Positions 39,920 through 60,865 of a DNA stretch of 64,000 nt are shown piece by piece. A model generated the notes under the pieces. The model was not told the DNA's origin and did no database searches. It worked only from the letters and a program-made list of their open reading frames with translations. The stretch spans positions 124,001 to 188,000 of the forward strand of contig JAAPAO010000002.1 in the NCBI GenBank assembly GCA_013115145.1. The letters are read 5' to 3'. Every line of letters starts with the position of its first letter. Position 1 is the first letter of the stretch. A program made the translations under genes and the position numbers. The DNA comes from Perkinsus chesapeaki ATCC PRA-425. Its lineage: Eukaryota > Protista > Perkinsozoa.

Positions 39920-41769
39920 ATATTTGTCTTTGTCGAGTCCTGCTGGATGTCTTCGGTGAAGGCATCTCGCTCGACTCTATCAGCTACGATATGAAGAAGT
40001 TTGACAAGTGTGTTAGTCGACGTCGCTCTCGCAGAGGCTGCTACTCCATTTACCGTAACGGCCTGCCCCTGTCGGTCACGCTCGTAGTCGAGCTTGCTTC
40101 GCTTGCAGTCTTTCCGTGCGGTCTGGCTTCAAAAGGAGCATTAGCTCTTTGACCTTCTGCTTTACTCACGGTGTCTACTGGACCTATAATGAGATTTGTT
40201 GTCTACTGCTACAATGCCCTTGTTGGTCCTACGTGGTTGCAGCACCGATTTGGCTCGCATCATTGTACATTTTCTCGTGTATTATTCGACTCGACTCATA
40301 ATCCCGCAGCTTGTCGGTAACACTTCTTGGGTTGCTGCAGAATCACTTATAGATGCTGTCAATTCTGGCCTCTATTCCATCGATATACCCTATTCATGGT
40401 TGTCGAAAAATCTTGGTTGGCTGATGGTATCTGTTGTAGTGGTCGATGCGCTTGACGCTGACACAATAGTGTTTGGCGTTGGTAGCTCTGGTCTTATTTT
40501 TTGCCGCTGTTGGATGATCTCTATTCTGGTCTCTCTCGGCTCTCGCTTAGCTGCGTCTGTTTGGCACCTATTGTAGAACTTTACTATTTCTCTGATACAT
40601 TATGGATTTGTGAACGCAGTTGAGCGCGAGTCGTAGGCCCCCAGAACCGAGCTTATTGTCCTTCTCTGAAGAGAGTACCATTGTCTCGACAACATTACTT
40701 GCTTCATATTTCGTACCTGTGCGTTTGTCTATCCCTCCACTAGTCTTCTATTTCTTTATCACTGGACGTCCGCGTTTGCCTGCCGCTTATGATGAAGGCC
40801 TACGTTGGAAATATGAGAAGCATTCGCGACGCCCATGTTTGTCACCTATTTGTCCTTCCCGAGTATTGCTGATTCCCACGCCACTAATGAGTTCTATTGA
40901 CAGACGCATTTGACACCGGTCGTAAAAAGGCTAGTTGTGTCTGTCGCGGCGTGCGGGCTGGAAGACAGCAAGCCTATTTGATAAGATATCGTCGATGCAA
41001 GCCGAGCTTCTCGACGACCTCGTCCGATCTAGTCGTCAGACTTTCCTATCACTCCATTGATGTTACCCTTCGCGCAGTAGGGTGCGGGTTTTTCGTCTTA
41101 TGCCTGGCCTCACGCTGCTTGCGTAGCAGTGGTGTTGCAATCGTGTTGGCCTGTGATCTTCACGGAGGCTATGTGATGCGGTCTGATCGGCTCAACATAC
41201 CTACCTCTTCGCCCTATGACATCTCAAATGGGAGTTGCGAGTTAGGCTTCCTACAAATACCAAATGCCCATAGTTCGGTAAGCTGCTGCTCTGCCAGCCC
41301 TGTACTATGTTGTCCTAATACTTATAGACTTATTGTATGACCTCGGCGTTGTTGGCGAAAAACAGTAAAGTGATGAAGTGTCACAAATGACCCAGTCACG
41401 TGTTTTAGCCTTATCCGCCGATTATGATAGTGATCTACTATCAGGCCCCTTTCGTATGCTCGTATCATCTTGGTTGCAGTAGAGTCTGAGTCTGCACTTC
41501 AGGGCTCATGCGAGTATCCTGTAGCGATTTGGCGCCCAGCAAGTGAACCTTTTTTGAACGGCTGAATGGCTCTGTCTGTCGACCGTCTCTTTTCCTATGG
41601 TGGGTTCATTTCGCGCTGCTGCTATCCTATGATTTCGATGCTCTTGACTTGTTGATTCAGTAACTTGGGTAAATGTTTTGTTAGTGTATTAATACTAGAG
41701 CGCTCGTATGCGAATTCCAAGCTATCCCGGAACCGCCTCCATCTTTAAGATTTATTTTTCCACTTCTAC

Positions 41770-42817
41770 ATGACCAAGGGGCGAATTTGCTCCACAGCAG
41801 ACGAAGGGGCTCGTCAGGTGAGTGGAAATGGACCGTTGGAGTCCCTCGAATCCGTCCTCAATCAGGGCGATACTCTTCGGGTCTCCAAGTCCAGTGCTCC
41901 TCCGAAACGGAGGCGGAGCGGCAAGCTGTGTCAGCATCCGAGTGAGTCCCTTGAAGGTTATGAAAGCGAGTCTGATGGTCTTGTGTGTAGGTGGGTGCAA
42001 GCGTTTCGCACAAGGAGCAACAAACCTTTGTATTGGTCATGGTGGAGGTCGTCGCTGCCAGGTTGTAGGTTGCCCTAGATCGGCTGTGGGCCGTAGCAAC
42101 AAATGTGTCTCTCATGGAGGAGGGCGTCGCTGTGAATACCCGCAGTGCTCCAAGAGCGCTAGAGGTTGGTAGCTCATTCAAGGATCTTAGCAGAACTCTC
42201 ACCCTTAGGTAACACAGGATTCTGCTTTGCACATGGAGGCGGCGCTCGTTGCAACATTCCGGAATGTGGCCGAGTGGCTTATCGGAGTACTGGCTTGTGT
42301 GTGGGCCATGGAGCTGGCCGAAAATGCGACTACCCACTATGTCAAGTAACATAATTCTCCCTGGTCCATCCTTGCTCACTTTGCAATCTTCTCTCAGAAG
42401 CTGTCGCGCTGGCCAACAGTGTACTGCCCCATACATAGTGTGATCACCGAACCCCGTATTAACGCCACATCAGAATCTGTCTCCACTGATGCAAGCGAAT
42501 TCGATTTTCACCCCTCCCTGGCGCTCGAAACCGCCGACTTCTCCTGTGAAGAATCAATTAACTCTTCGTCAACCGACACGCGTGCTGATTTCATCGATGA
42601 AGGCCTCGAAGAAAACTACGACACCGTGCCCCTCTTAGACTTCCTCGCCTGTAGCAGCGGAAGGCTTGGTTTGAACGAGCCTTCTGTGCCGGACGAGACT
42701 GCTATTTTTTCAAATGAGCGCTTGGTCGCTCCGGGTGAGGTTCTCTCGAAAATACTGGCTGGTATGCCATTCGACCACCAGTTTCCTTTCGACCTTTCTA
42801 TGGTACGTACAAAATGA
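41770..42817 (+). CDS. WRKY19-like Cys/His-repeat (CxxxxCxxxA....CxxHGGG) zinc finger protein
   Basis: Repeats CKRFAQGATNLCIGHGGG, CQVVGCPRSAVGRSNKCVSHGGG, CEYPQCSKSARG|NTGFCFAHGGG and CNIPECGRVAYRSTGLCVGHGAG, followed by an acidic C-terminus. Confidence 0.8.
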
Positions 42818-43251
42818 TGAAGTTGCTGCATTTTCCCCCGACCATTCCTCTGTGTTACGTAAGTTTCCGATCCCCTTGCCTGATCTCTGCGATCTCGGTA
42901 ACTGCTATCACTGCACTGTTTGGCTATTCAATATGGCCAGCGTGGCTATGTGCCTTTGACGCAGCAGTACCTAGTTTCCGCTTCTGTTATGGCCTAGTCC
43001 CTGATTGTTTCTCAAAGGTGTCTTCTGCTGTGTACTACTGTGTTGCTGATACGGTAGGCAACCGATGGTGCCACTCACATCGTCATCACACAACGTATGG
43101 CTGTTAGATTATGGAGTCGCGACGAAGCGCAGGCAGATACCTGCCAGAATTTTCCATTTAAGATCTTTGTGTTGTGTTACCGAGAGTGACGAAATGGGTC
43201 GAACAATCATCGACGTCTACAGTTGCCTAAGAGTTAACACGCCCAACACAG

Positions 43252-44577
43252 ATGTCAGCAGTTTCCCCTGCTTTAAAGTCTTCCCTCCGTGTAGCCCTGC
43301 TCCAGACGAGGGTGCTGCCAGATAAGACAGAATCGTTGCGAGGTACACTCGTACAGTGCCACACGTGAAACCTTGGGAGTGTTTAGGTGCACGAGAGATG
43401 CTTGTAGCGGCGATTGAAAGTTCTCAGCCAGACCTCTGCGTCCTGGGGGAGATGTTTACATGCCCTTACCACCCGAAGTAGCACGTTTTCGTTTTCAATC
43501 AAAAAGTGTAAACCGAGTTCCACAGGTACTTCAGACAATACGGCGAACGTCTCCCGGATCAGAGCCCGACGCTAGATATGGTGAAAGAAGTTGCCAAAGA
43601 GAAGAAGGTCGGCATCACAATCTCGCTCGTTGACAGGCGAAGATTCCTTACATCTTCTTCTAGGTGTGGATCGTCGGCGGAACTGTTCCTGAGTTGGAGG
43701 GCAACAAAGTATATAACACGGCTCTGGTCGTCAACGATTCAGGCGAACTAGTGAAGATTCATCGCAAGGTAAACAGGCCCGATCAGGCGATCTGCACTCG
43801 GGACACTTTCATGGTTTCGACTAACCGTTCGAGCACTTCAGGCACATCTGTTCGACATAGATGTTCCAGCTGATGGGGAGAAGCCCGGTATTCGGTTTTT
43901 CGAGTCAGAGACTTTAAGCCCTGGCAACACAGGCCCGTGTGTTTTCGATACACCCTGGGGGCCCTTCGGGTAAATGCAGACATGATCCAGGCCTGGAGGC
44001 ACGTTGTATTTGCTGCTTTTCTTTAGACTGGGAATCTGTTATGATATACGCTTCCCTGAGTATGCTGCGCTTCTCCGTAATGTTGCACCCGGTTTGAAGA
44101 TGCTCATATATCCCGGAGCTTTCAATATGACAACTGGCCCAGTAAGATGCGCTTGGCATAACACCGGCATCCCGGGCGACCGTCTACTTTGTAGGCTCAC
44201 TGGAGGCTGCTCGCAAGGGCTCGGGCGCTGGACAATCAATGCTATGTGGCGATGGCATCTCCTGCGCGTAGCGAGGTTCCAGAGGATTATCAGGCTTGGG
44301 GCCATTCCATGATTGTCAACCCTTGGGGCGAGGTGAGGAGTACGTCACAACACAATTCGATTTTCTAGTGCAGGTCGTCGACGAGACTGATGAGAAGGCT
44401 GGATGGTTCTCCGTTGACGTCGATCTGAGCATGGTTGATTCAGTCCGTCGCAACATCCCAACAGCAACGCAGAAGAGGTCAGTCGGGGTTCATTAATGGG
44501 TTATGTTGACTCCCATCCTCAGATATGATTTATATACAAAAGTTATGCCTGTGCACCAGGACGAAGAAACGCGTTAA
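43252..44577 (+). CDS. NIT2: Omega-amidase NIT2 (nitrilase superfamily)
   Basis: [17 protein letters not shown] (E), HRK|AHLFDIDVP (K), [10 protein letters not shown] (C), [11 protein letters not shown]|AHW, RALDNQ and [11 protein letters not shown]. Confidence 0.9.
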
Positions 44578-44799
44578 AGAACACCGTTGCATTCAGCAAA
44601 TTTTTCCCGGTCTCTTTTTATTAAACCATTGTTCACTGAAACCAATGTCGAGTTAGTGTGATCGCTCACTCGCAAAACGTATTTATGAAGGCCTTTTATG
44701 TGCCGTCACCACAAGAAAAGGCTAAATGTTGTTCAGCTATTGTCTTGCTATGCGTTCATTGTTTTGGAGCGTTCTACTCCGCCTCCTGCTTGCAGAAGA

Positions 44800-47700
44800 C
44801 CCGACCGAGTTCTGGTCAAGGTGTAAGGACTGCACTGCGCGTGAGCGAGTTTTTTGCTTTACCAACGGTTAGTCTGTCGATGAGATTGATTCCGGAGGTG
44901 AGTATTCAGGTGCGTGCCTTGAAGACCTTTACATAAACTCTCCCGGTGATTTGATGTGGTCTCGCTGCATGAACCCACTAACCGAGCCCGCAAGCTGTCG
45001 CACTAAAGGAATACATCCTCCAACTAAGGCGCCCAAGATGGAGCATGAGCTATGATATCTTTCTCGTCTTTGGAAGACACTTGTATTGTGCTTGATAAGT
45101 GGGTTGAGGGCCTTCTAAGATACTCTCAACGCAACAAGGAGATCGTGAGACGGCATATCCACATGCAGCTCGGTATCCAATCAACTTCATTTTTCGTCAG
45201 TATTTCCAGGGGTGAGATCAATAGATTTCATTCGCTTCCGGACGCTGGACGCGAGGGCAGCTCTCAGCTGTGCTACTGATACCCTCGTTGTGGCTATACG
45301 TGGTTCAGCTGTTTCATCGTACTGAACTCGTCGCGGAGGCAAGAAGTTGTGGGTTTTGGGGATGGTGTTCGGTTTCTTCTCGTCCTTCTTCACTACGATT
45401 GGTGACGGTGGCTGATACAGTTCGAGTTCCGTCTTCCTGTTCGCGGCGAGCTTCCTGCTCTTGGCACATATCTGCGGGCGAAATGTGCACTCCATATTCT
45501 CGGCTGCAACAGCTGCATAATGAAGTTTCCCTCGACGATCGTGCGTCCGCTCTGTCAGTGGCGGAGCAGAGTTGCGTGCCCTCAGCAGAGCACCATCTGT
45601 CCGGGGACTGGGCAAATCATCACCAAGCGGTATCCTTGGGACGAGCGATGATAAGCCCATTGAAGATCTCCGGACAGGTTTCACAGGTCCGCCTCCAGTT
45701 TGTTCTGCAACAGTAGGCGGAGAATGAACCGGGCTTGGGCCTGGAATACCAGGATGACTTTACATGAAGCCAAAAGCGGATCTCGTTACCTGGTGTGGCG
45801 TGGCCGGTAGCCGAAGCAGGACGGCTTGGGGAAGTCGCTGCCGACTGTATGACATAGCGCTGCTTGGCTCTGAGATAGTTCATTAAATTCGGGCTGGTCA
45901 CGGCTCCCTGACTTTTCGGTGCCTATGAAGGCAGTAACTTGAGGAGAGTTGCCGCGGGAAGTGGACAGAGATAAGCGGGGAAGATTTGGTCTACCGGAAC
46001 GGCTACGAGGCGAGCCTACCAGGAGAATGCCATCAACCACTTAGCTATACCAGCGAGTGATTTACCAGATTTCAATTTCGGGGAGGGCGAGAGGCCATCT
46101 GACATCCCTTCAAGATCCAATGTACAGTCAGGCTCCGATGGTCTGATAATTCAACTTAGTAAAGTGAAAGCAGAAATATTCGCTGTGGTCCTACGGGAGA
46201 GGCTGGCTGGTAGGAGCATCGGCGTCGGTCTGTTCCAGATTGCCTGATAGACCGAAGCTGCTGATAGCCAGCGACCTAGTTGACACTAACCTCCTTCCTC
46301 TTGGTCTTGTTGGACAGACGCATCGACCCCAACGCCACGCTCAGAGTGTCCCTTGTTAGAGTGCGCTCGTCCTGGCCTTGGATCTGACGAGGATCTAAAG
46401 CAAATGAGTGATAGCCAATATGCTATAGCTATGTAGAGAACGTGGGTACACTTACCGTTTATATCGCTTTTGTTTAGACTTCCCTGCATAACACCCTTCC
46501 GTTGCATCCCGCCCGACAGCGACGTCGACCTTCTCAGGCAAACGCGGCGCCTTATCCTGTTGTGACCTCCTGGATGAAGAGCAATCGCCTGAACGTGGAA
46601 GCTGCAACTCTCTAACATCAATAAAACGTACTATTCTGTGAGTCGTCCACTTCACATTCGACTTCCCTCTTGCTATCAGCGAAACCTGTGAGCAGGCCGC
46701 CGCTCGCTTGCTCCGTCATCAAGTGATCACTGGAAGCATGCTCCAACACGCACTCCTCTCTGAAACGCTGCTTCGAGTATTAGTTCGTCTGCCCTTCCTC
46801 ACCGGTAGTGAACTATATCTGGATCATCTTGTAGAGCAGGGGCCCCACGGAAACAGCAGAAAAACAAGCTCCGACGACCACTCGACGTCCTTCTATTAGG
46901 CATCATACAACAGCAGGACTGAATGAATGCCAGAGACTATCCACGTGCCATAGAATCAGGAAGGCCACTGACACGCTAAGCTTTCAAGCTGCAAGCTTCA
47001 TACCCCTGTTTATGTGGTATTGATGCAAGATGATAGAACCACCTCTCTCATACTCATTAACTTTGTTGAACTAAACACATCCCTATGACGTAGAAACTGT
47101 GGGCGGAGAGGACGTAAGGTACAGAGGAATATTAGTATCTTCTCCACGACTTCATCACGCATCTGTGAGATTGCGGTCATTAAGCACCTTCCAGGATCGT
47201 TTCCTCGCGCGATTTCCGTAAAGCTCTGAAAATTTATCCTAGCATCACGGACGGACTGCCCCTCCTCACGACGTACCCTCCTCTAACCATTTACTACTTG
47301 TCGTTGCGCGGCTCGCTTCGGGAGTCAGCGGCGTCGTTTTACTGACGACTCTGAATCCCTAACAGTGTAACAGTGCCCCCATATCTCTCTTATCAAATGC
47401 CAGATTACCTTCACTACGTACGGCTGGGCCCTGGCAGTTCTCATTCGCGCAGCCTTCTGCTCGCCCTTAGCCTTTAGTTCAAGAAGCGTCGCCTGGGCAC
47501 TTGGATCCATCCAGAAGAACTTTGGCCCGGACTTGGAGGTGTTCTCAGAAGAATCTTGAACAAATTTTCTAGCGAAGTCATCCCAGTAATGCCCTCACCT
47601 TGAGATTCCGCCTCTTCTACTGAATCGACTTCGGGCTGGTCAGCTTTGGAGGAGCTCACATCTGTCAGCGGTATCGCTCCTCGTAGCAAGCCACATGCAT

Positions 47701-47812
47701 TACTTTCTTCCAAGTCCAGAGTCTCCGCGCTCAGGCCCTCGGGGGCCTTCAAAGTCACTATGGTTGAGGCACCCTTCTTCGACGCAGAGCGGCGTTTTGA
47801 TCGGAGAACCAT
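44800..47812 (-). CDS. Low-complexity hypothetical protein(s), one or two genes; 3' end approximate
   Basis: Exons MVLRSKRRSASKK..., KFFWMDPSAQATLLELKAKGEQK and ENMECTFRPQICAKSRKLA (ECTFxP motif), with short GT-AG introns. Confidence 0.45.
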
Positions 47813-47889
47813 CGGATAAGGCACGAACTAAACTACACATGCCAGCCCGCCCGAACGCAATTCCACAGACCAGCAAGTAGAGACACTCC

Positions 47890-49315
47890 TTAAGCTTTAG
47901 TAGATTCCCCCGGCTTCTTATCAGTAGTAGTTTCAGGTGATGGAGCTGCTGTGGACGCGCCGCTGGCGGAAAAGCCCTTCACTGCCTTCAGGAACTGCGC
48001 CTGGTTCTCGGACGAGAGCAACTAGTGACGAAATCTCAGGGGATACTTCCCTGCACAGGTGCATTACATTAACGCGGTATGATGCCAGCTGACCCTCCTC
48101 CGCATTCTCATCATCTAAGCCAAAGAACTTGACACTCTTTGATCCAACCTAAGCGCCTAATTACACCACTACTTTACAGCGGATATTACCAGCTCGTATT
48201 TATCGGCATCTAATATCGGCGTATTTAGTATGACCTTCCACACTCCTTTCATTCGAACTACTATCCGACCAGCGGGCTTGGCCTGAAGTAGCGGCAAAAA
48301 TTACCGGCGCAGAAGACTGTGATGCGTACGCTATCGTCTCCATCCTTTTTGAGAACCCTCAAACTACCCATGCCTCTCTCGGTCCATTTATATTTCGGTG
48401 GCTGGGTCTCACTGGCACCTAGAGAATCGATATGCCCTGTTGAGTCCCTGAGTAACTGTACTTGAGCTAGACGCATCTTTGTTGTCCTCTTGCTTCATAA
48501 GCTTGTACAACTTGCAATCCGATGAGAACCTGACAAGTCGAATAGCGCCTACCACATTACCGCCCCATTACAGAAGAGATTCGCCCTCCTCTCCACTGCA
48601 CACAGTATGAGGCTGTGGCTCGGACTCCTCGGAAGCGTCACCTGCCAAGAATAATCGGAACCAAACAGTTAGCTCAGGATACCTTCCTCCGGGCTGGTGG
48701 CCTCTCCAGCCTCAGATTTGCCGCTTTGGTCAGCACCTCCAAAGGCAGCGAAGCCTGTACCAGTGCCACCAGACAAACCTGTGAATGTGTTAAAAACGCC
48801 CGTTGTTCCCCTAGGTCGTTACTTTTCCCAATATCGCCGAAAAGACTCCCGCCGCCACTTTTTGACGCGCTAGCGAACGAGATACCAGCGAAGGGATTGT
48901 TGCTCTTTGGAGCATCTTCGCTTCCTTCCGATTTAGAAGAGGCTGCGAAAATGCTGTAGATTACAGAAGAACAAAAACGCCTACTTCCTAGATTGGCAAA
49001 TGGGTTCTGAGACGACGCCGCGCTTTCTGTTTCAGAGGCAGTCGAGGGCTGATCATGGGCATCATCCTAGTAGAATGAGATTGGTAGTACCTTTTCGGCG
49101 CCGACGGACGTGGCGGGCGGTCCAGTTTTCCGCCTTACGGAGACAATTTTGCGCTTCGCAATGACCTGAGTCGATGCAAACCGTGAACACCAACCCTTTT
49201 CAATGCAAAGTACATCGGCCGCTGCCTTCTCACGGCCCGTTCCAGGATCCTCGACGTTTTCCTCCTCTGGGGCGTCATCTTTGGTGAGCTGGTTTTCTGC
49301 AACTCTTTTGGACAT
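47890..49315 (-). CDS. NUP50: Nucleoporin Nup50/Nup2-like (N-terminal NUP50 motif, NPF/FG-like linker, Ran-binding domain)
   Basis: MSKRVAENQLTKDD...EKAAAD|VIAKRKIVSVRR, NPFA repeats, and a RanBD with CKLYKL and KWTERGMGSLRV. Confidence 0.8.
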
Positions 49316-49420
49316 GACAAGACAAAGCCAACTCGCTGTCATTTCTTGAGCAACGTACAACACAACACCCCATATAGTTACGCACTACTTTCAATTACCC
49401 ATCGTGTAGATACACAAACA

Positions 49421-50980
49421 TCATGCCGGCAAGAGAGTACCATAATCTCCATCGGGAGCGTACAATTGCCTTCTTCCGCGAATAGAATACCATTTACGGA
49501 CGCTTGCCGCCAAAACAAAAAACGCAAACGCCACACATATCAGCGGAACAAAGTCTCCGGACACTGTCGCCCCGGTCGGTTTCCCATTTCCCAATTCGAC
49601 TGTCGCGACCAGAACATTCTCGCGTTCATTGCGGCTCTGAAAGCGGGCCTTTTTACGTCCGCTAGGGTCAACAATAACAGAGTCCCAAGCGAGATCTGCC
49701 TTCGCAATAGCAACGCGGTTCTCTACCGCCCGGAAGACGGCCTGAGAGAGATGATCCCGAACCGCGGACCAGTCCTGGGATGGGTTCAGCACGAGGCCTG
49801 CTCCTTGCAGGACAATAGATCGCAGAGTGCTGGGGAAATCAATGTCATAGCATATGAGCGTTCCGACTTTCCCGGTAGCACTAACGTTCGGCCCAAGAAG
49901 AGACGACTGCGGAATTTCGTACGTCGGATATCCGAATCTCAAGGAGCTTTCTTCCCCTATCAATGTTAAAGGCTTCTGTTTGCCGTAAACCCCGAGTCGC
50001 TTCCCTTCTGGTCCCACCATGACCGCGATATTACCGCTCTCTCCTACAAGTGCGCCAACGGACATGAAAATGCCCAGTTCGCCAGCGACTGGCGAAATCT
50101 TGCTGTCGACGTAGTCCTCGGCCTCTGTGAAACTCTTGAACGGACCAAGCCATATTTCCGGCCAAACCACAAACTTCGCTCCGTCCTGCGTCGCCACTTT
50201 CCGCGTTAGATCAATTTGCCTCTCCAAGGTTGCATTGCAAGTAGCATCTTTCTCATACGTTTCCACCAAAGACATATTACAAGACACTCCTCCGAGTTCT
50301 GCTCCTGGAGTGATGGTCGCCACAGTGACTGACGGCGCTCTGTATATTCGGGGAACATAAAATTGAATAACGGAAAGGCAGCACCAACCTGCCATCCCCC
50401 AGAAGAGGAATTTGAAAAGGGCTTTGCGCTGCCGGGAGAACGCAATTTGCCCGAGGGCGGCGTTGACAGCGAAAACCGAGAATTCCAGGGAGTACAGCCC
50501 TAGGAACGATATAGGTTGAATAAGCATAGGTGCGTCGTGGAAAGGCGTACTTAAGGCAAAGAACGTTCCCAACAGCAACGCGGTAGCATAAACGATGGTA
50601 GTCCAGTACGCTGCCCTCCGCACGGGTTTACTTAGATTCGACTCATCGTCGAACAGGTAGGCGTCCGCACTGTCCATGGTGTCCCAAAGCGCGCCCCACA
50701 CGGCCCCTGTGCCCAAACCGATGTACCATTCCAGACCAATCGTCCAAAAAAATATTGCCGAGCATGCCATGAACGTCGCTAATGAGACCAGGAGGGACCT
50801 TTGGTACTCCTGGGATGCAATCATAGGGCAAACGCAGATCAAAGCGAGCGGCCAGATTTCCAAGGGCTGGTCGAGGCCGAACTTTATCGTCCGCAGATTA
50901 TATAGCACGACCGAAAGGCCAGAGAGGAGAAAACTCAGCAAAGTAGGTCGGGTAACTGATACCGAGTCATATAAAGTCAT
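49421..50980 (-). CDS. Apolipoprotein N-acyltransferase (Lnt)-like membrane CN-hydrolase, intronless, 519 aa
   Basis: N-terminal multi-TM region, then VVWPE (E), YGKQKPLTLIGE (K), LICYDIDFP (C), PSQDW, AVFRAVEN, DSVIVDPSGR and a C-terminal GDFVPLIC TM. This is the Lnt layout. Confidence 0.85.
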   Translation of the reverse strand: MTLYDSVSVTRPTLLSFLLSGLSVVLYNLRTIKFGLDQPLEIWPLALICVCPMIASQEYQRSLLVSLATFMACSAIFFWTIGLEWYIGLGTGAVWGALWDTMDSADAYLFDDESNLSKPVRRAAYWTTIVYATALLLGTFFALSTPFHDAPMLIQPISFLGLYSLEFSVFAVNAALGQIAFSRQRKALFKFLFWGMAGWCCLSVIQFYVPRIYRAPSVTVATITPGAELGGVSCNMSLVETYEKDATCNATLERQIDLTRKVATQDGAKFVVWPEIWLGPFKSFTEAEDYVDSKISPVAGELGIFMSVGALVGESGNIAVMVGPEGKRLGVYGKQKPLTLIGEESSLRFGYPTYEIPQSSLLGPNVSATGKVGTLICYDIDFPSTLRSIVLQGAGLVLNPSQDWSAVRDHLSQAVFRAVENRVAIAKADLAWDSVIVDPSGRKKARFQSRNERENVLVATVELGNGKPTGATVSGDFVPLICVAFAFFVLAASVRKWYSIRGRRQLYAPDGDYGTLLPA

Positions 50981-51133
50981 TTACAGAATAATAATATCTA
51001 AAATGATCTATCGTGACAACCATAAGTCGGCCGTGTGCAAATGAAAATCCATTTCGAGGCCGACAGATTATTCCCAGAAGAGCGCAACATCTATCGGGTA
51101 GAAACCAACGTAATTATGGTCCGCAAAAATGAA

Positions 51134-54100
51134 CTAGCCGTCACGAGCCTCAACTTCGGGCTCGCTCTTGGCGACTACTTTTGACCACATAAGCTCGTCT
51201 TCCTGGAACATGTTGTACCTTTCAGCGGCTTCGCAGTGCTTTTCCCATTTTCCCCACTCGTCCGCATACCCCTCTTCATCGTCATCGACTCGGCCACATG
51301 ACGCCATAGGGTCTCTGAACATCTGATCAGCCGTCAGCTTCATATAATGGGAGAATCTCCGGCACCAATTAGCCGGGTAGAACTCGGGTGCTAGAGTCAC
51401 AGCAAAGGACCAGGCCCCACGAGCGCTGTTCTGCTCCAAGCTCATGCTCCGTTTGCGGTGGCCGGGCCCTTCACGCCACTGCTGTCGCTGGACCCAGCCC
51501 CACGATCTGTCATTATCGTCGTCACGGAAGCCAACCTTGTCAACGTGGACGTGACGCAACCTCCCATTGCCGCGAACGCGAGTATCCAGCGAGAGGAAGT
51601 TCAAGAGAGTCGCTTCGGGGTTACCTGGCTGGTCAAATACGGTATAGTCCCGCCGCCTGAGCTTATCAGAAACATGCAGCACCGCATCCATCACCGAGCC
51701 TCTTTCCAAAGAAAAGTCAAAGTCAAAATCGCGCCAGTCGGCCAGTAGAGCCAGCATCTGGCTTTCCATCGGCCCGTCTCGCAGCGGCGTGTAGAGAGTC
51801 ATGCCGACGTTCTCGTTCTGGTCAGCGCGAGCCAAGCTGAGAGTTATCCAAGCAATTATCATATGCTCCAGCGGAATGTGGTAATGCTCCTCCGCCAGGT
51901 AGCGGAAGTGACAAATGAATCTATTTGTAATTTTGCAATAATGATGATATGCATCTCGGGTCATGAATTCATCATAGAAGTAGGACCCGCGGAAGCTGCT
52001 TCGATCCGGGGCACCATGGGTCACTCGGAGACCATCGTAGAATCTTTGTTGCAGCAGAGGGCGAGGGTCCACCACCTCGAGTGGTTCGGCAGTCAAGTCC
52101 TCGTCGGTGAATGCCTTGCTAAGGTCATCCGCGATCGGAAAGTAGGAAAGAGCGTCCGACCACGCATGGCGTATCATAATAAAGAGGAACTGGCGTCTGA
52201 CGATGTACTTCTCTGGATCGTTGGGGTCGTCGATGCGCTGTTGTACCAAATAGAGCTTCAACGGAGTGTCATCTGTCCTGTCGTCTTCCATGTCGTTCCT
52301 AGCGCGGAACATCTGCCGCTGACATTTGCGAGGATCTTTTCCCCAAGACCAGCGAACACCGATAGGCACATGATCGTCACGCTCAGTGCACACTACCTTT
52401 ACCCAGGCATGCCACAACGGCTTGCAAATCAGCACCCTTAGCCACCAGGCGGTCCAAGAGTCCTCGGGAAGGCGAGACAGAGTAGGTAACAGCACCATGA
52501 CACTGTCGTAGAGGAAACTGGCTATTCGCGCCGGCCCAACGATGTGAGCTCGGAGCATAGGATGACGGTCGACCATACGATCAACGGCAGCTTGGAGGCG
52601 ATCCATGTCGAGATCACCGCGGATCTGGAAGGCCCACTTGCACACTCTGGTGAGCTGACCAGGCGCGAACCACGCGCGGAAGGGCTCGTTAGGGCCTATC
52701 GGTCTCAAAGCCTCCTGCTCTTTCCTGGGAGACTGCAGAAGTTCCACCAAGCGCGCAACGTCTTTGCAAATCAAAACGTCCTTCGCAGCAACTTGTACAG
52801 GGAGCTTCTTCATCAACATCGACACTTGCAGTGAGGTCATCCCGCCGAGATCCGTCTCAGCCTTGACGTTAGACCAACCAGTAATACCCGACACCAAGGC
52901 GCACACGTCCTCTAAGTTCACATCACCAACCAGTTGGGTAGCATCAGGCACTGTGCGAACAACGTTACGGACGCCTTTCACGAAATGGGTTCTAGTCCAG
53001 TCGAACCTATCTAGCGCTCGCTCTTCCCACCACCACTTCAGGAAAGTACGATATCTGTAGACCTGGGGCGGAACCTCCAATTTCTCATTCGGGACAGACT
53101 CTTCCTCAGTTGTTTCGATCGGTGTAAGCGTTTCTGGAATCTCATCAGCATCCGACGCCGACATGATATCGTCATCCACACTCTCGTGATCACTTGGACC
53201 AGGAGTAGCTGCAGCAACACCACTACCCTCAATCGTCAAGGTAGGCGAGCCTGTGGTGGACACACCATTACCATCGTCGGAGTTTCCACCTTCACTTTCC
53301 CTCACGGGCGAAGCGTTCTCGTGTTCGGAGAGCAGCCGGATCTTCGACAGTTCGGTAGCCTCCTCTACGCCCCCTTCTGGGGCCTCATCAGTCAGCACAC
53401 TGGCGGCGTCATGTCTTCCCAAACCGCCGTCGATGCTTTCGTCGTCCCTGGGCGCATCCACCTTATCGTCCTTCACAGCACTCGCAGCATTCCATGACCC
53501 TGCATTCTCCCAATCAGACGCATCCTGTGCAGTGCGCAACCATTTGAATGAGAAGTACCACCAAAACCACTGAGCGTTGTACTTCATCTGGCGCTTGGCG
53601 AATCCCCAGGAGAACCACTTGGCCGATTCGTAGCTGCCCTGGTTGCCTATAGCATACCAGAAAGCAGGAGCCCACGACAGGAGGCGACCGTCTTTGAATG
53701 CCAACCATGCCCCGATGAGCGTCCAAGCCCATGTAAGCCGCTGGACTGGCTTGAAACGGCGCGACAGAGCGAACCAACCAATGAAGAAGCCAAGACGATC
53801 AAACGGCGAATTTCTGATTAGACGCAAAAAGAATAGGCCCGCCCGCTCTCGCAAGGTTTTCGCGTCGTCGTTGAACGCGGTCATATGGAGGGTCGACAAC
53901 CACATATAAGGAAGGTGCAGCAGGAACTCGCGCGGACCACAAGCCAAGAAGGATCCTGCGCCCCAGAGACCGACACGCTTCCACGCGCTCATCAGGCGGC
54001 GCCATCGCTCTGGCTCCGAGGAAAGCCTCCAGCAATTCTCATGACCGAGCATCTCCTTTACCAACTGGAATCGATCTATCTTGTTCGTGTTGGCATTCCT

Positions 54101-55928
54101 CGGCAAAGGCTTGTATGACATACGAATCGTCAAGTCGAGCACGGCCGCATCCTTATTGGCAGCCAAGGCGCTTCGGAGAGTGTTGTACTGGCCAAGCATA
54201 GACAGAGCCATCTCGTCCTCCTCGGTTATCGCATACGAGGGCGCTTGCAATTCCCCATCCTCCGAGCCACTGCTGTCCGAGGAATCAGCATACCAATCGT
54301 CAGAGTCGGAGTCACTCTCCTCCGCCTCGGGCTTCTTCATATAAACAAACATATAGTTGCGACCGTTGTGAGAGAGCACCGAAGCTTCCTCGACGGCTGC
54401 ACCACAGGACAACGCGAGCTGCTCTATTGGGAGAGCATCAATCCATACACCACCAGAAGCTTTGAGCCGACCCCCTAGACGGCCAAGGTAATGTATCCGA
54501 CCTGCAATGATGAAATGAGACCAGCGCGCAACCTCGTTCCCCAGTAGTACCTGCGTCATCCATTTCGGCGACGTCTCCAGTTCTGAACCAGCCTTCGGCG
54601 TCTGTTAGAAGTTGACAAACGAACGGCCCGCGCATCATAAGCTCGCCGCGCCTCCGACTAAGTTTAGAAAGATGTCGCTCGTTTCAACTATCAGACCTAT
54701 TACCCGCTCCTCGACGGATCCGTCTCCTGGTCACCCAATGGGGCGAGTTTAATCGCTACTTCTTTGGAACGCAGAGTTCGGAACATACCACTACCGTCTG
54801 AGATGAACGCCGATGGGGAGCTAACCACGAGTAGCTCTAGACGAAACTTGAATCACTCTCATCTGCAGCTGCGAAATCCCATAGTGTCAATTCCGATTCA
54901 ACCAAGTTAATCCAACCCCCTATTACCGTCGCAAAGCAAACACAGCCAGAACTCGGTGGCAGTGAGCAAATCAATCACTCGGGCGGATCCGACCAGGGCC
55001 TGGAGCTCGGCGAGCTTGGCCGGAGTGGATGCCTCGCCCCAAAGCAACAGGTGCGTCAGCTTGCATTTTGACAACAAAGTTGCGTTCAAGAACAGCTGAG
55101 TCGGAACCGCACCTACTACTGTGGGAGGGTAGGCTGTGCACTGCAGACCGGCCTTCAGGTTATCAGCGAACAGACATACACCCCCTATCGAGAGAGCAAT
55201 GTTCACCTGGCCCATCATAGACGCCAACCATTGGAGACCCGCGAACTGGAGGACCACCGGTTGGGGGCCGCCTGGCGGCAACTTGACCACCTCCTGGGCG
55301 TATCCTCGCAGTTCCGATAGCGGCATACCATGCGTAACTATTATCATTTTTGGTGTTCCAGTGGTTCCGCCGGAGAACATCTTGAAAAGGGGCCTGTAAC
55401 CGGGGTCGCAAGTCGACAGCTCGGGAGCCTCCCATCCGGTTGGACGAGCCGGCACATCCTCCGGAGCGTCGACAACACGACACGGTGCCATCGAAGCGAG
55501 GCTCCCTGTATTCCCGACTCCTGGTCGAGCAATCAGGATATCAGGTTTAGTTTGATTGATAAGATGACGTAGGCGCCTAAAATAGTATACAACTTTTTGA
55601 CACAAATCTGACCACCCCCGAGTTACCCTTCGTTTGCAGAGGGATCCAACGGGGCCATCACCGTACCAAGAGCGCTGCATGCCAATAACACACTCACCCA
55701 GGTGGCCGATCGCTCGATCGCCACTCCCACACAGTCCCCTTCTTTAACCCCCAGTACTTCACTGAGCCAGTAAGCCATGTCTTTGCCCTTACTGCAGATC
55801 TCAGCGTATGTCAACACACCCGTGACGGTACCATCAGTTTCGAGTGTCGCGCACGCAGTGAGGCTAGCCAGTAGAGGGTCCTCGAAAGCGTGATGGTAGA
55901 GGTTATAAGGGTACTTGTAGGCCACCAT
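51134..55928 (-). CDS. Single-module NRPS-like protein: A domain - Trp-rich insert - carrier (T) domain - terminal condensation domain
   Basis: A-domain motifs LTYAEI, MAPLDP, FSGGTTGTPK (55348-55380), LWGEA, GELMMRGP, WFRTGD, GRIHYLGR and NKIDR. T domain DLGGMTSLQ (Ser codon 52832-52834). C domain GDLDMDRLQAAVDRMVDRHPMLR and RHAWSDA (52151-52171). Several 5' introns, then an exon of over 3 kb. Confidence 0.85.
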
Positions 55929-56073
55929 AAGACTCAAAAGATGTCGAGTCCGACGCCAACTGAAAACGAACATTGCTACCGCGGCAAGTTTCCCAGAACT
56001 CGATGTCCAAGACTAGTGGGGAAAGTCAGTGTAAATGGTGCAAAATTGATGTACAGGTGCGGACACAGGTCAC

Positions 56074-56553
56074 TTAGCATAATAGCGGATCCAGCGGGGC
56101 GGCAGGTACTGGTGGCGGTCCCCGAAGTCCTTCGCCGAGTTGCACGGTAACCTGACCCTCTGGTTCGACGGAATATCCCGACAGTAATGTTGTCGCATCG
56201 CAAATTAATTGCTGATTGCCGAAATCCAGCGGAGTGGGACCTTCCGGGGCCTCCGGTGCCGCCATAACTGCCGCCAAGTTACTGGTTTCTTCCACTGGCG
56301 TATTGTACGGCATCGAAACCGATAAACTCGCTCGAGAAACCCCTCGTGCACTCAAACCGCAGCAGTGCTCGTGTGTTTGCTTTACCACACGGTCGCCTGT
56401 GGTCACTAAACGGGCCTTGCAGCCTTTTCCCCGAGACTTGCAAGCCCAATAGACTCGGTCCTTGTAAACTCGCTGCATGTGGTACACGTTGTCGTCTACT
56501 ATGCAGACTACTTTGCCCCGCTGCGACGTCCGGAAAGTGGCAGTTTTCGCCAT
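56074..56553 (-). CDS. FLYWCH-type zinc finger protein
   Basis: SQRGKVVCIVDDNVYHMQRVYKDRVYWACKSRGKGCKARLVTTGDRVVKQTHEH matches the FLYWCH pattern (YW-C...C-ARL...H-H). Confidence 0.75.
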   Translation of the reverse strand: MAKTATFRTSQRGKVVCIVDDNVYHMQRVYKDRVYWACKSRGKGCKARLVTTGDRVVKQTHEHCCGLSARGVSRASLSVSMPYNTPVEETSNLAAVMAAPEAPEGPTPLDFGNQQLICDATTLLSGYSVEPEGQVTVQLGEGLRGPPPVPAAPLDPLLC

Positions 56554-57137
56554 CAAAAGAACATAAAATCAACTAATTCACGACTGCTTATTATTCTCGA
56601 AATCTCCTCTCCCACCGATCGCCGCCTCGGCGTTGCGGTATAGATTTACAGATCTTGCATTCTTGTCTTTCCTCAACGTTTTTCTGCGTTGCCTCCGAAA
56701 ATACAAGATTGGACCGCTAAGGTTACCTGTATACCTTGACCAAGCATCGTCGGGCTACCCTTTGCATATCACGGCTCAAACCCACTGGAATGATGCCCTG
56801 TTCGACTGATTCTCAGGCGTCTGCCTCTCTGGATGACCCTAGCCAGATTCTGACGGTAGCTACTACGTGAGCCCCGACGGTGCCTTGGCGCATTTAATTT
56901 GTGGTGCTAATCCTGTGTTATAGTCCCTCGCCCCCTCCCCTAACCCTCCCTCGCTTGTCCTATTCGAGGACTGCGTATCGCTGACCGTTAGCCTTGAACA
57001 AGTACCGCCAACTGGGCACAGGTTTTTCGTTTGATCATCGGTCCTCTCAGGCATTTAGGATAACTGTGATTAATCTAGGCTTGTACCGTGACTTCTTTGT
57101 TGTTTGCAGAGCGTTCGGTCCCACCACCCTTCCTCCT

Positions 57138-58312
57138 ATGTATAGCCGCAACACTCTGTACGTGGGGAACATCTCTTCGCGTACCACTGAGCGTGACATC
57201 AAGGACGAGTTCGGTCGATATGGTCGCGTCATTCGATGCTACATTCCTCCGGGAAAGAACATATGTTTCGTCGAGTACGATGATGAGCGTGATGCTGAGG
57301 ATGCTTACCGTGGCATGGCGTCTGCGCGCGTTGACGGTAACACTTTAAACCTGCAATGGGCGAAGGCCGGCCCCAGGTGAGCCTAGAAATGTCAACTCAT
57401 GGGGCGTGGAGTTGTTCTTTTCAGGGACCGCGTGCGAAGATACTACGGCTCGCCCTCTCGAGGTTATGGCCGCAGGCGTTATGGTCGATCGAGAAGCCGC
57501 AGCTACTCTCGCGGTCGTTCCCGCCGTGGTCGTAGCTACCGTTCTCGGTCACGGTCTTACTCTTCCCGATCTCGCTCTTATTCTTCGAGGTCTCGCTCTG
57601 GATCCTACGATAGTCGGTGAGTTGCTGTACATTAGCGCTGCGTGTCACAGTTTTGCTTTTGATCAGGTCCGATAGCAGAGACCGCCGCCGCTCTTACTCG
57701 GAGTCGCCGAAGAAGCACCACGACAGTCGCGATCGCTCCTCTACTGCGAAGGCCGAGGACAGAGAGCGGTCTCGTCACGAGTCAAGGTCCAGAACAGCCC
57801 GCAGAGATGACCGAGATGAGCGCAGGTCCAGGAGCCGAAGCGAGAAGGCGAGCGTGAGCCGCTCGAGAGATCGCAGTGAGCACCGTGAGGATCGTTCCAA
57901 GTCTCGCGAAGCCGATCGCTCTCAATCCCGCCGCTCGCGGAGCCGCAGCGAGCATTGGGACAGTCGCTCTAAGAGCCGCAACGATGAGCGATCGAAGGAC
58001 CGGGTTGAGGCTGACCGCCGCAGTGAGAGCCGACGCAGTGGCAGTGAGAAGCGAGGCCGAAGTGCCAGTAGGGTCGATGAGAAGGAGAGTACTGATAAAC
58101 GAAGCGCGTCACGCGACTCAAGGCCTCGTGAAGAGTCTGAACGTCGCAGTCGTTCTCGCCGTGATAGTAAAGACCGCAGCGAGCGCAGGAGTTCAAGCCG
58201 CAATGATCGTAAGAGGAGCGCCTCTCGCGATGCCAGTAAGAGCCGGCAGAAGAGCGCCCGAAGGGACGAGAGTGAGAAGTCTCAAGTTGCAGAGGATCAC
58301 AAAGACGACTAG
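57138..58312 (+). CDS. SR splicing factor (RRM plus long RS/RD domain)
   Basis: TLYVGNISSRTTERDIKDEFGRYG...CFVEYDDERDAEDA, followed by RS-rich exons. Confidence 0.9.
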
Positions 58313-58419
58313 TTTCTCTACCTACTTCGACTGAACGGTATCACATTATCTCTCACCTCCTCAAGCTTATCGGGTTGGGTTGGTTGGCGTGGTAACTTCT
58401 CCTTGTCAGTTATTTCTTG

Positions 58420-60865
58420 ATGTCCTCGTCAGCTGGAGCGGTGGTGGCCGTGGCATCTGTTCGGTCACCCGTATCACCGGTTATCGAGATTGAGCTCCCG
58501 GTGTCCGCCCGAGATTCTACAAGTATTACGCCACGTCCTTCACTGGCTCCTGGGAAAGGTTCCGATGCTGCAGTGCTTTTGTGTGGCTCTCAAGTCTTCG
58601 ACATCTTCCCCGAATCCTCAGACTTGCCCACCGACCTAGACTGCGAACCAGAATCCGTTACTCTCTCCAGCGGCCATAACTATGCTCTGCTCCGTGATGG
58701 TCAAGTGCTCACCCTCGGGGACCCCCCTCGGCCGTTTAAGCCTCTGAAGGGTGTGGTGATTTCTCAGCTCCTCGCAGGTACAGGCTTCATGCTCGCTGTA
58801 TCCCGGGACGGTAGCGCCTATACCTGGGGTGTGTCCCTACTTGGTGCCCTGGGCCGCAGCAGTCTCAGTGAGTCTCTCCAGCCTGGGCTCGTTCCTCTAT
58901 CCGCGCATGCAGTATCTGCAGCAGTTGGTCCAGAGCATGTGCTGGTCTACGGTGACGATGGGTCTCTATACGGTTGGGGCAACAACTATAATGGGCAGGT
59001 CCGGCCTGGTGGTCCTGAAGTGATTGCAGAACCTACCCCCGTTGATTCTATATCTGCTTTGCTGTGTAAGATCTGCACTCCCTTGCTGGCCTGTGGGGCA
59101 GACCACTCGGTAGGAATGTGTGCTTGCGTGCTCGATGACGACTGTCACTTTAAGGAGGTCATTCTTTGGGGCGGCCACCGCCTGCCGGGAGTTTCTACCT
59201 GTAACGATGTCGTCAGGCGCATAAGCTGTCCACCGGACTCTCGGTACATAAAAAGTCTGGGCTCTCGCAGTGCCGTGGCATCTCCTTCTGGCGTCTACGT
59301 AGTCTTCGGTTGCTCGGGCGTGGACAGCGTAATCGCAGGGGAACATGTTAAGGATGGCTACCGGCTAAGTGACCTGATGATGGTCTCGGACCGGTTGCTC
59401 TTGCTCTACAGAGAGTCGCCCGGATTAAAGCATCGTTGCCTTAGCGAGAGAATGCAGACTGATTCGTGGTCCTTTCGTCCGGCTAACTTACCGGCGAAGT
59501 CCTGGTTGGAGCGTCGGCGTCATCGGGCCCAGGTAAGTCTTCAGCACGAATTTCCTTTTGGCGAGGCTTGGCTTTGTCAGGTAGCTGAGATATTTGAGCT
59601 TGGCAAGCTGAACCGACAGAAGCAGACCTCGGCTCTACTCGAGCGACAAAGAGAGGCTGAGAGGCTTACAGAAGTGCGAAGTTGCAGCAAAGCTTGCACT
59701 ACTGTACTTTGCGGATTCAGGTGTGGATGAAAGACTTGCTCCCACACTACATGCCGCATCGGCCTGTACCATTGCGGATGGCTTCCTTATGGAGACTAAA
59801 CGGTCTTCCTCCACGGGCCAGAGCTGCTCTGTGGCCTGCGGCGATTGGGAATCCATTACGAGTTACAAGAAGTCTGTACGATGTGCTGATACGAAAGGCG
59901 AAGTGGGTGGTCTTCAACACTAAAAAAGATTCAAAATCCACTCTTCAGGGTCGAAGAAGCCAAGTGGTTGAAGGAGATAAGCACTATGGCCACTACCGCA
60001 GACGGTTCTCCGGCAGGGCGCGCAGAGTCTGGTAAGGTAGCGAACTATCGCTTTCTGTGGATAATTCGGTCTGCATAGGTTCATTTATATCGCACCTCCG
60101 AGCAATCGACCTTGACCTACCACGGACTCTGCCAGACCTCGCGGTGATGAGTATGCCGGATGGCCCACTGCGCAAAGAGTGTCGCCTTGTACTGTCCGCG
60201 TTTGCCATGTATAGACCTGACATCGGCTACGTTCAAGGTCAGTGGATCTCCCTTACGGCGATGGCTGACCGATATCACTACTTTTAGGTATGTCCTTTCT
60301 GGCAGCTATGCTCCTCCTTTACATGGACTCATTCTCTGCCTTTGTTTGTCTATCATCCTTGCTCCTGAGTTCTCCGACGCTGCTAGGCCTATACCAGCTT
60401 GACATCGAGACCAACACTCGGCGGTTTCGCATTTTTATGCGTCTACTCCGAGCGCATAATCCGGCGTTGCATCGCCATCTGACTGACGTGGGTGTTTGCC
60501 CAGAGCAGTTTCTCCCCATGTGGTTTCTGACATTGTACTCGAGGCCTTTGACCACAGAGTCTGCCGCTCTAATCTGGGACCTTTATCTGTTGGACAAGGA
60601 GCCTGTTCTTTATGTGGCCGGTATAGCTATCCTGGACATACTTTCTGACCGTTTGCGAACTCGTGATTTCGACGAGTGTCTTATGCTTCTGCTAAGAGAC
60701 ACTCGTGAGATTATCGGCAATGATCGGGAGACTCTGTTGGATGCTATGAACTCCGTAGTCGTACCCGACACTACTTATCTGGAGATCACAGACTTGGAAG
60801 CTGAGTTTGTCCCTCCTCTAGCGCTCCCCAGTGAACGATTATTTGCATGTACTTCGCCGCCCTAG
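58420..60865 (+). CDS. RCC1-repeat plus TBC (Rab-GAP, TBC1D12/14-like) domain protein
   Basis: RCC1 repeats (GSAYTWGVSLLGALG, GSLYGWGNNYNGQV, LACGADHSV). TBC motifs GLPPRARAALW, IDLDLPRT (Arg finger), GYVQG|MSFLAAMLLL (Gln finger) and WFLTLYSRPL. Confidence 0.85.

Follow-up and report, generated by a model that had tools for sequence, protein, structure and literature searches.

The subject of this analysis is a set of three neighbouring genes on the minus strand of a 64,000-nucleotide stretch of DNA from Perkinsus chesapeaki ATCC PRA-425 (contig JAAPAO010000002.1, positions 124,001-188,000). The whole stretch is referred to below as the window, and coordinates are window positions 1-64,000 unless another contig is named. 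In the 5' to 3' order of their strand, the genes encode a FLYWCH zinc-finger protein, a protein resembling a nonribosomal peptide synthetase (NRPS-like) and a protein resembling the bacterial lipid N-acyltransferase Lnt (Lnt-like). The preliminary description of this locus proposed that they form a biosynthetic mini-cluster. We conclude that they are probably independent neighbours, presumably without functional coupling, and that their arrangement is a gene order inherited in a tightly packed, trans-spliced genome and not a biosynthetic unit. The mini-cluster proposal is not supported, because the synteny of the NRPS-like and Lnt-like genes is not specific to this pair, the pair is split in one lineage, paralogs and homologues from outside Perkinsus lack the partner gene, and the taxonomic spreads of the two families differ.

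The single-exon FLYWCH gene (56553..56074, minus strand, 159 amino acids (aa)) was recognised by Pfam (FLYWCH, E=3e-11), and its product would be a small zinc-finger protein. It is followed by the five-exon NRPS-like gene (55928..51134, minus strand, ATG at 55928 and stop at 51134), which corresponds to the GenBank protein FOL47_003274 of 1506 aa, and then by the Lnt-like gene (50980..49421, minus strand, 519 aa), a single exon and open reading frame (ORF) with a CN_hydrolase match (E=1.5e-15) and a score of 82 bits for TIGR00546 (lnt). The ORFs, the domains and the translation of the exons thus place the three genes on the minus strand where the preliminary description had put them. The identities that it gave them are correct as judged from Pfam, TIGR00546, the predicted folds and the catalytic residues, and its spacers, measured here on the minus strand as 145 bp between FLYWCH and NRPS-like and 153 bp between NRPS-like and Lnt-like, are exact.

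The gene order was compared with that of P. olseni, where three assemblies show an RRM/RCC1-RabGAP gene on the opposite strand and then FLYWCH, NRPS-like, Lnt-like, NUP50 and the genes onward. The P. olseni NRPS-like gene (1522 aa) is followed 152 bp downstream by the Lnt-like gene (501 aa), and NUP50 begins 146 bp downstream of the latter. The collinearity extends end to end over positions 40592-60242 of the window (~20 kb) and includes the housekeeping genes. Since the whole block is collinear, the conserved adjacency of the pair holds no specific signal. The expected synteny of the pair in relatives is therefore seen in so far as the order is kept in the three P. olseni assemblies, but it is not a property of the pair. 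Co-localisation beyond the background synteny was not found, given the collinear ~20-kb block and the split of the pair in the lineage described below. The estimation of dN/dS yielded no result because synonymous sites are saturated. The tight packing noted earlier for all genes of this region is likewise seen in P. olseni, where the same annotated gene run has gaps of 292, 152, 146 and 86 bp.

One contig of P. olseni was considered as a sign that the pair is unlinked in this species, and this was rejected: the contig (L004) bears only an additional NRPS-like copy of 4.9 kb, and at the main locus, on large contigs, the two genes remain together. The extra copy lies at 7490-12363 of L004 (JABANP010000678.1) and comprises most of the gene, is 95.5% identical to the main copy and lacks the first ~214 bp. 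It is present in one P. olseni assembly, between unrelated genes and with an S8 peptidase gene upstream, and could reflect either a genuine duplication or an artefact of assembly.

Further evidence on the pair came from the sequencing run SRR12548988, which represents a third Perkinsus lineage. Two contigs of this run, L001 and L003, share the flanks of the block and are 66-89% identical to each other. On L003, FLYWCH is followed by an intact NRPS-like gene, by an Lnt pseudogene that starts 125 bp past the NRPS-like stop codon, and by an intact Nup50 gene. The Lnt relic contains frameshifts, in-frame stops and two large deletions, and its catalytic WPE has become WLD. On L001, FLYWCH is followed by an intact Lnt-like gene (65% identical to that of the window) and then by remnants of Nup50 only; directly upstream of this Lnt-like gene, 79 bp of the NRPS-like 3' end and the spacer persist as a relic. 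These relics indicate that the ancestral block had the arrangement seen in the window and that, once it had been duplicated, one copy retained the NRPS-like gene and the other the Lnt-like gene. The expected linkage of the pair in relatives thus fails in this lineage, since the Lnt gene beside the intact NRPS-like gene is a pseudogene and the intact one stands where the NRPS-like gene was deleted. The adjacency in cis is thus dispensable, even though this reciprocal loss left both functions in place. The duplicated block suggests a segmental or whole-genome duplication in the SRR12548988 lineage.

The distribution of the two families was examined as well. The Lnt-like gene, described earlier as rare, belongs to a multigene family and is one of several Perkinsus paralogs of the bacterial-type lipid N-acyltransferase. 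A second locus has the order RNR-small, HSP90 and Lnt-like, with two tandem Lnt-like genes in P. chesapeaki (JAAPAO010000093.1, contig L010, 7624-11554), and is conserved in P. marinus (contig L002, 10001-12526); no NRPS-like gene is present at this locus in either species. A quick tree search placed all eukaryotic Lnt-like proteins in one clade nested among bacterial Lnt, with at least four Perkinsus paralog groups. Among these groups of the tree, only that of the window (group A) adjoins an NRPS-like gene. The closest Lnt-like genes outside Perkinsus are on two metagenome contigs of compact, intron-poor environmental eukaryotes (L006, 8001-11042; L007, 4404-7656), where a PALP and CBS-domain gene resembling cystathionine beta-synthase comes after the Lnt-like gene and a CKS gene after that. 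No partner gene was found within 8-10 kb of the non-Perkinsus homologues examined. One of these, a close synthetase relative from a compact environmental eukaryote, lies among unrelated genes, and no CN_hydrolase gene was found within 10 kb of it. The suggested co-occurrence in bacterial operons received no support either, as the nearest bacterial Lnt has no neighbour with an adenylation domain.

The synthetase family is common to Perkinsus and dinoflagellates; those of its members with a species name belong to Polarella glacialis and Gymnodinium smaydae, both dinoflagellates. When the eukaryotic Lnt clade was used as a search profile, the matches were Perkinsus proteins, a few proteins of environmental eukaryotes and then bacteria. 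No dinoflagellate Lnt-like protein was found in this word-indexed search of a database containing dinoflagellate proteomes. Within the limits of a word-indexed search, the two families thus differ in their spread, and the co-occurrence in dinoflagellates that had been suggested was seen for the synthetase alone. Taking the paralogous, the non-Perkinsus and the dinoflagellate evidence together, we found no co-occurrence of the pair across taxa and paralogous loci.

Spliced-leader trans-splicing is documented in Perkinsus (PMC3101222). The transcript data came from a single study, with no more than three samples and four small 454 libraries primed on the spliced leader. The contigs, 100% identical to the genome, span the 5' ends of FLYWCH and the NRPS-like gene, and contig depth in such libraries cannot rank genes. 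For FLYWCH, contigs of two RNA runs end at the AG acceptor at 56573..56574 (minus strand), and the loose end is the reverse complement of a dinoflagellate-type spliced leader (..GCCATTTTGGCTCA). For the NRPS-like gene, contigs of two RNA runs from one sample end at 55961, with the AG acceptor at 55960..55961 (minus strand); the reverse complement of the loose ends, CCGTAGCCATTTTGGCTCA, is a dinoflagellate-type spliced leader. It should be noted that the libraries are reverse-transcription PCR products, so that the exact letters of the leader may derive from the primer; the junctions at 56574 and 55961 each fall on a genomic AG. As each of the two genes has its own spliced-leader junction, their mRNAs are capped separately. 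As a separate observation, the 5' untranslated region of the FLYWCH gene contains a three-codon upstream ORF, ATG TTC TTT TGA (56553-56566, minus strand), whose stop codon overlaps the main start codon (TGATG).

The arrangement is comparable to the spliced-leader same-strand arrays of kinetoplastids, dinoflagellates and Perkinsus (PMC3101222, PMC3795323), in which unrelated genes lie head to tail with spacers of ~100-300 bp and each mRNA receives its own spliced leader. Here, polycistronic transcription of the run is putative, and the leader site was observed for two of the three genes. Most probably, a dense same-strand set of genes was inherited by Perkinsus species from their common ancestor, spliced-leader trans-splicing matures each mRNA separately, and adjacency amounts to conserved gene order and not to a shared pathway. 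The reciprocal loss in the duplicated block likewise means that adjacency alone is no sign of a cluster in tightly packed, trans-spliced genomes.

The spacer between the NRPS-like and Lnt-like genes contains a 16-nt element, AATTACGTTG[G/C]TTTCT, located 19-34 nt past the NRPS-like stop codon (51115..51100, minus strand; 9867-9882 of contig L011; 6503-6518 of contig L003). Sequence comparison showed that it is identical in the three P. olseni assemblies and in L003, and that the rest of the spacer is poorly conserved. The element is unique in the window, where 0.05 chance matches are expected. It may be a 3'-end signal, a trans-splicing signal or a protein-binding site, and of the features observed here, it alone lacks an explanation and could bear on a functional link in trans.

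Several observations weigh against the conclusion that the genes are independent neighbours. The adjacency of the pair and its spacer of ~150 bp have been kept between two species whose synonymous sites are saturated, and they are ancestral in the third lineage. The 16-nt element, invariant in the three lineages, may serve both genes as a regulatory or processing signal. In each of the three lineages, both genes persist in at least one intact copy, and a dependence in trans is therefore possible. That L001 and L003 come from one genome is only probable, judging from the shared sequencing run and the decayed Nup50 of L001. The RNA contigs, which cover the 5' ends of FLYWCH and the NRPS-like gene, include nothing of the Lnt-like gene. 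Finally, a word-indexed protein search can miss distant Lnt-like proteins of dinoflagellates.

The model of the NRPS-like gene was checked exon by exon against FOL47_003274, which was taken as the reference protein. In the ORF listing, this region had appeared as two AMP-binding pieces (55973..55623 and 55680..54907) and a 1141-codon ORF (54559..51134) with no Pfam match. Each exon translates to a contiguous part of the reference protein, and the four introns (50, 129, 46 and 49 nt) are of the GT-AG type. All exons lie on the minus strand. Exon 1 (55928..55627, residues 1-100) contains the start of the adenylation domain, and an RNA contig ends at its donor site at 55626. The mRNA body begins downstream of the ATG at 55973, and the start codon is thus that at 55928. 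Exon 2 (55576..54927, residues 102-317) encodes the core of the adenylation domain, including the motifs FSGGTTGTPK and TATEF, and its ORF has an AMP-binding match (E=2e-16). Exon 3 (54797..54704, residues 319-348) has GT-AG introns on either side, and exon 4 (54657..54551, residues 350-384) runs through GELMMRG and WFRTGD. Exon 5 (54501..51134, residues 386-1506) encodes the end of the adenylation domain (GRIHYLGRLGGRLKASG, NKIDR), an insert, a linker, the carrier and condensation domains and the TAG stop. Compared with its counterpart in the third lineage, the protein has 76-77% amino-acid identity over its length, and its carrier-condensation part exceeds 85%.

The adenylation domain was identified by its AMP-binding match on the full protein (E=1.6e-33) and by the core motifs FSGGTTGTPK, TATEF, WFRTGD, GRIHYLGRLGGRLKASG and NKIDR, and its nearest solved relatives are the adenylation domains of NRPSs. 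In the Perkinsus protein itself, Pfam detected neither the carrier nor the condensation domain, the latter reaching only 10.8 bits, and left the C-terminal 627 residues unnamed. Meanwhile, NRPS didomains of a carrier (PCP) and a condensation domain (PCP-C) came first among the structural matches of the AlphaFold2 model (pLDDT 77.5). The carrier domain (52927..52730, minus strand) has the predicted fold of such didomains and a G-x-x-S-L motif with the putative phosphopantetheine serine Ser941 (52832-52834); this serine, in GMTSL, aligns with GVDSL of the relatives, one of which (P0152) passes the PF00550 cut-off. The terminal condensation domain (52702..51305, minus strand) contains RHPMLRAHI and HAWSD, with His1163 at 52166-52168. 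Its top structural matches are the NRPS condensation domains of 2jgp, LgrA and AmbB-TC; His1163 and Asp1167 are invariant in 33 sequences of the family, and the relative P0146 reaches the Pfam Condensation (PF00668) cut-off (31.0 vs 30.6).

With the adenylation and carrier domains and a condensation domain whose catalytic His and Asp are intact, the protein is predicted, from motifs and the model, to be a complete adenylation-carrier-condensation (A-T-C) module and a self-sufficient synthetase, able to load and release its product alone. Its adenylation domain would activate a carboxylic acid and load it on the carrier domain of the same protein, and the terminal condensation domain would release the acid through condensation with a free amine or alcohol. 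The motif QFAGLQW, found where amino-acid-activating domains have FDxS, suggests a substrate other than an alpha-amino acid, although the solved-structure alignments stop short of this motif.

Between the adenylation and carrier domains lies a Trp/Phe/Arg-rich insert (residues ~545-745, 54022..53420, minus strand; W 9.7%, F 9.7%, R 9.1%), conserved in the three lineages and followed by an acidic linker. No segment of transmembrane hydropathy was found in the insert, the Kyte-Doolittle mean over 19 residues being <1.0 in P. chesapeaki. As the insert falls below transmembrane hydropathy, the earlier designation of the NRPS-like protein as membrane-associated is a supposition only.

The protein resembles NRPS PCP-C didomains and one-module A-T-C enzymes (TycC5-6, 2jgp; AmbB-TC, 7x0f; LgrA, 6mfw) in having an upstream adenylation domain with the core motifs and then the carrier and condensation folds with the catalytic His and Asp. 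It differs from them in the ~200-residue Trp/Phe/Arg-rich insert and ~135 acidic residues between the adenylation and carrier domains, in escaping the Pfam carrier and condensation models, in a condensation motif that reads HAWSDA where relatives have HAxxDG, and in a family that was limited to myzozoan-type eukaryotes in the search made. For this, an exhaustive HMMER search with the C-terminal 627 residues (880-1506) was used, which found 163 relatives. The best of them are proteins of 1200-1300 aa with an N-terminal AMP-binding domain and with PP-binding and Condensation matches that range from borderline to passing. The carrier-condensation profile also matched 11 gene-sized metagenome contigs with no flanking genes, which are probably transcripts. 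An excess of adenylation over condensation domains has been reported in dinoflagellate transcriptomes (PMC8283056). The condensation domain of the A-T-C family lies mostly under the Pfam threshold, which may explain part of this surplus.

The Lnt-like protein was identified as an Lnt-fold homologue from its catalytic residues and predicted structure. Alignments of homologues gave the triad Glu275 (50156-50158), Lys334 (49979-49981) and Cys377 (49850-49852), all on the minus strand, within a PF00795 match (E=1.5e-15). Glu275 and Lys334 are invariant and Cys377 is at least 90% conserved among 45 homologues, and all three are invariant within the eukaryotic Lnt-like clade. The pairwise sequence search against solved structures found soluble nitrilases only, and the relationship to Lnt therefore required the profile hidden Markov models and the predicted fold. 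The AlphaFold2 model (pLDDT 89, pTM 0.90) has full-length bacterial Lnt as its top 24 PDB matches, ahead of any soluble nitrilase. Its fit to these 24 structures gives the predicted membrane architecture, with a polytopic N-terminal domain, the nitrilase domain and a C-terminal transmembrane helix. The LNT_N Pfam score (17 bits) is under the cut-off, and the score for the TIGR00546 equivalog (82.3 bits) misses the cut-off of 132.9; the protein is a homologue with the Lnt fold whose functional equivalence is putative.

The likeness to bacterial Lnt of E. coli and P. aeruginosa (PDB 5vrg, 5n6m, 8b0k) covers the full-length fold (TM-score 0.63-0.71 over ~540 columns), the Glu-Lys-Cys triad and the C-terminal transmembrane helix followed by a basic tail. 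In contrast to these enzymes, the Perkinsus protein is eukaryotic, only 13-17% identical to them, under the TIGR00546 cut-off (82 vs 133 bits), one of several paralogs and equipped with a Perkinsus-specific Cys-x13-Cys-Asn-x-Thr insert. The tail and the loop before the last N-terminal helix are basic. By the positive-inside rule and homology, with which the bacterial topology agrees, the active site would face the non-cytosolic side. The thiol would most likely be turned toward the lumen or the cell exterior, and the acyl chain would most likely come from a membrane lipid. To our knowledge, there is no diacylglyceryl-lipoprotein pathway in eukaryotes, and we know of no substrate of a eukaryotic bacterial-type Lnt enzyme. 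Searches of the literature on Perkinsus with Lnt and on eukaryotic Lnt returned nothing relevant. The insert itself, Cys-x13-Cys-Asn-(Ala/Gly)-Thr, occupies residues 233-248 (50237-50284, minus strand) at the start of the catalytic domain and is conserved in the three group-A orthologues, with low model confidence. It holds a possible disulfide and N-glycosylation site, which would fit a lumenal or extracellular location.

The pair had been compared with the Dlt system (DltA/DltC/DltB/DltD), and the likeness is one of concept only: an adenylating enzyme, a carrier and a membrane acyltransferase. The analogy fails on the fold, as DltB belongs to the MBOAT family and the Perkinsus membrane enzyme has the Lnt (nitrilase) fold, and on the architecture, as the synthetase bears its own releasing condensation domain. 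No MBOAT-type acyltransferase that could take a carrier-bound acyl group is encoded in the block. The Lnt-like active site, moreover, would face away from the cytosol, and conserved co-occurrence of the Perkinsus pair was not found at the loci examined.

The next best explanation after independent neighbours is a two-enzyme pathway, in which the synthetase would produce, on the cytosolic side of a membrane, an acyl or aminoacyl conjugate that the Lnt-like enzyme would N-acylate or remodel on the opposite side to give a lipo-conjugate signal or a surface modification. We regard it as unlikely, and a functional link in trans between the two enzymes is doubtful to much the same degree. The same-strand adjacency in P. 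chesapeaki and P. olseni, ancestral in the third lineage, would agree with such a pathway, as would the intact and conserved state of both enzymes, the retention of one intact copy of each in every lineage examined, the aromatic and basic insert of the synthetase, which could bind a membrane interface, and the invariant 16-nt element. However, the housekeeping genes nearby show synteny that is at least as strong, the two genes of the pair are separated in one lineage, and the other Lnt paralogs and the non-Perkinsus homologues never stand beside the synthetase family at the loci examined. The families also differ in phyletic spread, the synthetase has its own release domain and no signal peptide, and the Lnt fold, as known from solved Lnt structures, uses lipid donors at a non-cytosolic site. 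A more specific form, confined to Perkinsus, is less probable still: an amide or ester conjugate made by the synthetase at the membrane would be N-acylated by the group-A Lnt-like enzyme with a phospholipid-derived chain, and the 16-nt element would couple the processing of the mRNAs.

The upstream FLYWCH protein could also be a transcription factor dedicated to the genes of the two enzymes downstream. A FLYWCH copy lies directly upstream in all blocks, including that of P. olseni and the two of the SRR12548988 lineage, and RNA contigs match the FLYWCH gene at 100%, showing that it is expressed. However, after the duplication one FLYWCH copy precedes the synthetase only and the other the Lnt-like gene only, and FLYWCH thus tracks the block and not the pair. 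According to PMC12787238, dinoflagellate-type organisms rely mainly on post-transcriptional control. We consider a FLYWCH-controlled unit very improbable.

Least credible of all is the entry of both genes into the Perkinsus ancestor from one bacterial operon as an island that stayed together: the Lnt-like family is bacterial-type, with its eukaryotic clade nested among bacterial Lnt, and NRPS modules are typically bacterial or fungal, but four spliceosomal introns interrupt the NRPS-like gene, its family extends across dinoflagellates and other eukaryotes with compact genomes, the closest non-Perkinsus eukaryotic Lnt-like genes have different neighbours, and an adenylation gene is absent from the nearest bacterial Lnt locus.

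A lipid-conjugate pathway encoded by two genes in a eukaryote would have been of note, but the evidence favours ordinary conserved gene order. If true, the pathway in trans would be the first eukaryotic use of an Lnt-fold enzyme downstream of an NRPS-like enzyme. Taken as separate genes, in which form they are best studied, both add new, uncharacterised members to enzyme families that are already known. For the Lnt-like gene, this is a monophyletic, multi-copy bacterial-type family with the full Lnt fold in Perkinsus and a few environmental eukaryotes. For the NRPS-like gene, it is a family of one-module A-T-C synthetases, common to Perkinsus and dinoflagellates, whose condensation domain evades Pfam, which bears on the reported domain excess (PMC8283056). 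Either enzyme is a candidate for a parasite-specific target in a pathogen of shellfish (clams).

The housekeeping genes Nup50 and SR protein, said earlier to flank the set, were found through their first exons. NUP50 (49363..49067, minus strand; Pfam NUP50 E=2e-11) is collinear with the annotated P. olseni NUP50/Ran_BP1 gene and is a flanking gene outside any cluster. On the other side, the divergent RRM (SR-type) gene (56994..57380, plus strand; RRM_1 E=6e-16) is collinear with the P. olseni RRM gene. A multi-exon gene for a soluble CN_hydrolase protein lies at ~43380-44500 on the plus strand, ~5 kb from the Lnt-like gene. One of its exons matches PF00795 and the gene corresponds to a 299-aa P. 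olseni gene, which makes it a second member of the nitrilase superfamily in the same block; homologous DNA is also retained in contig L001.

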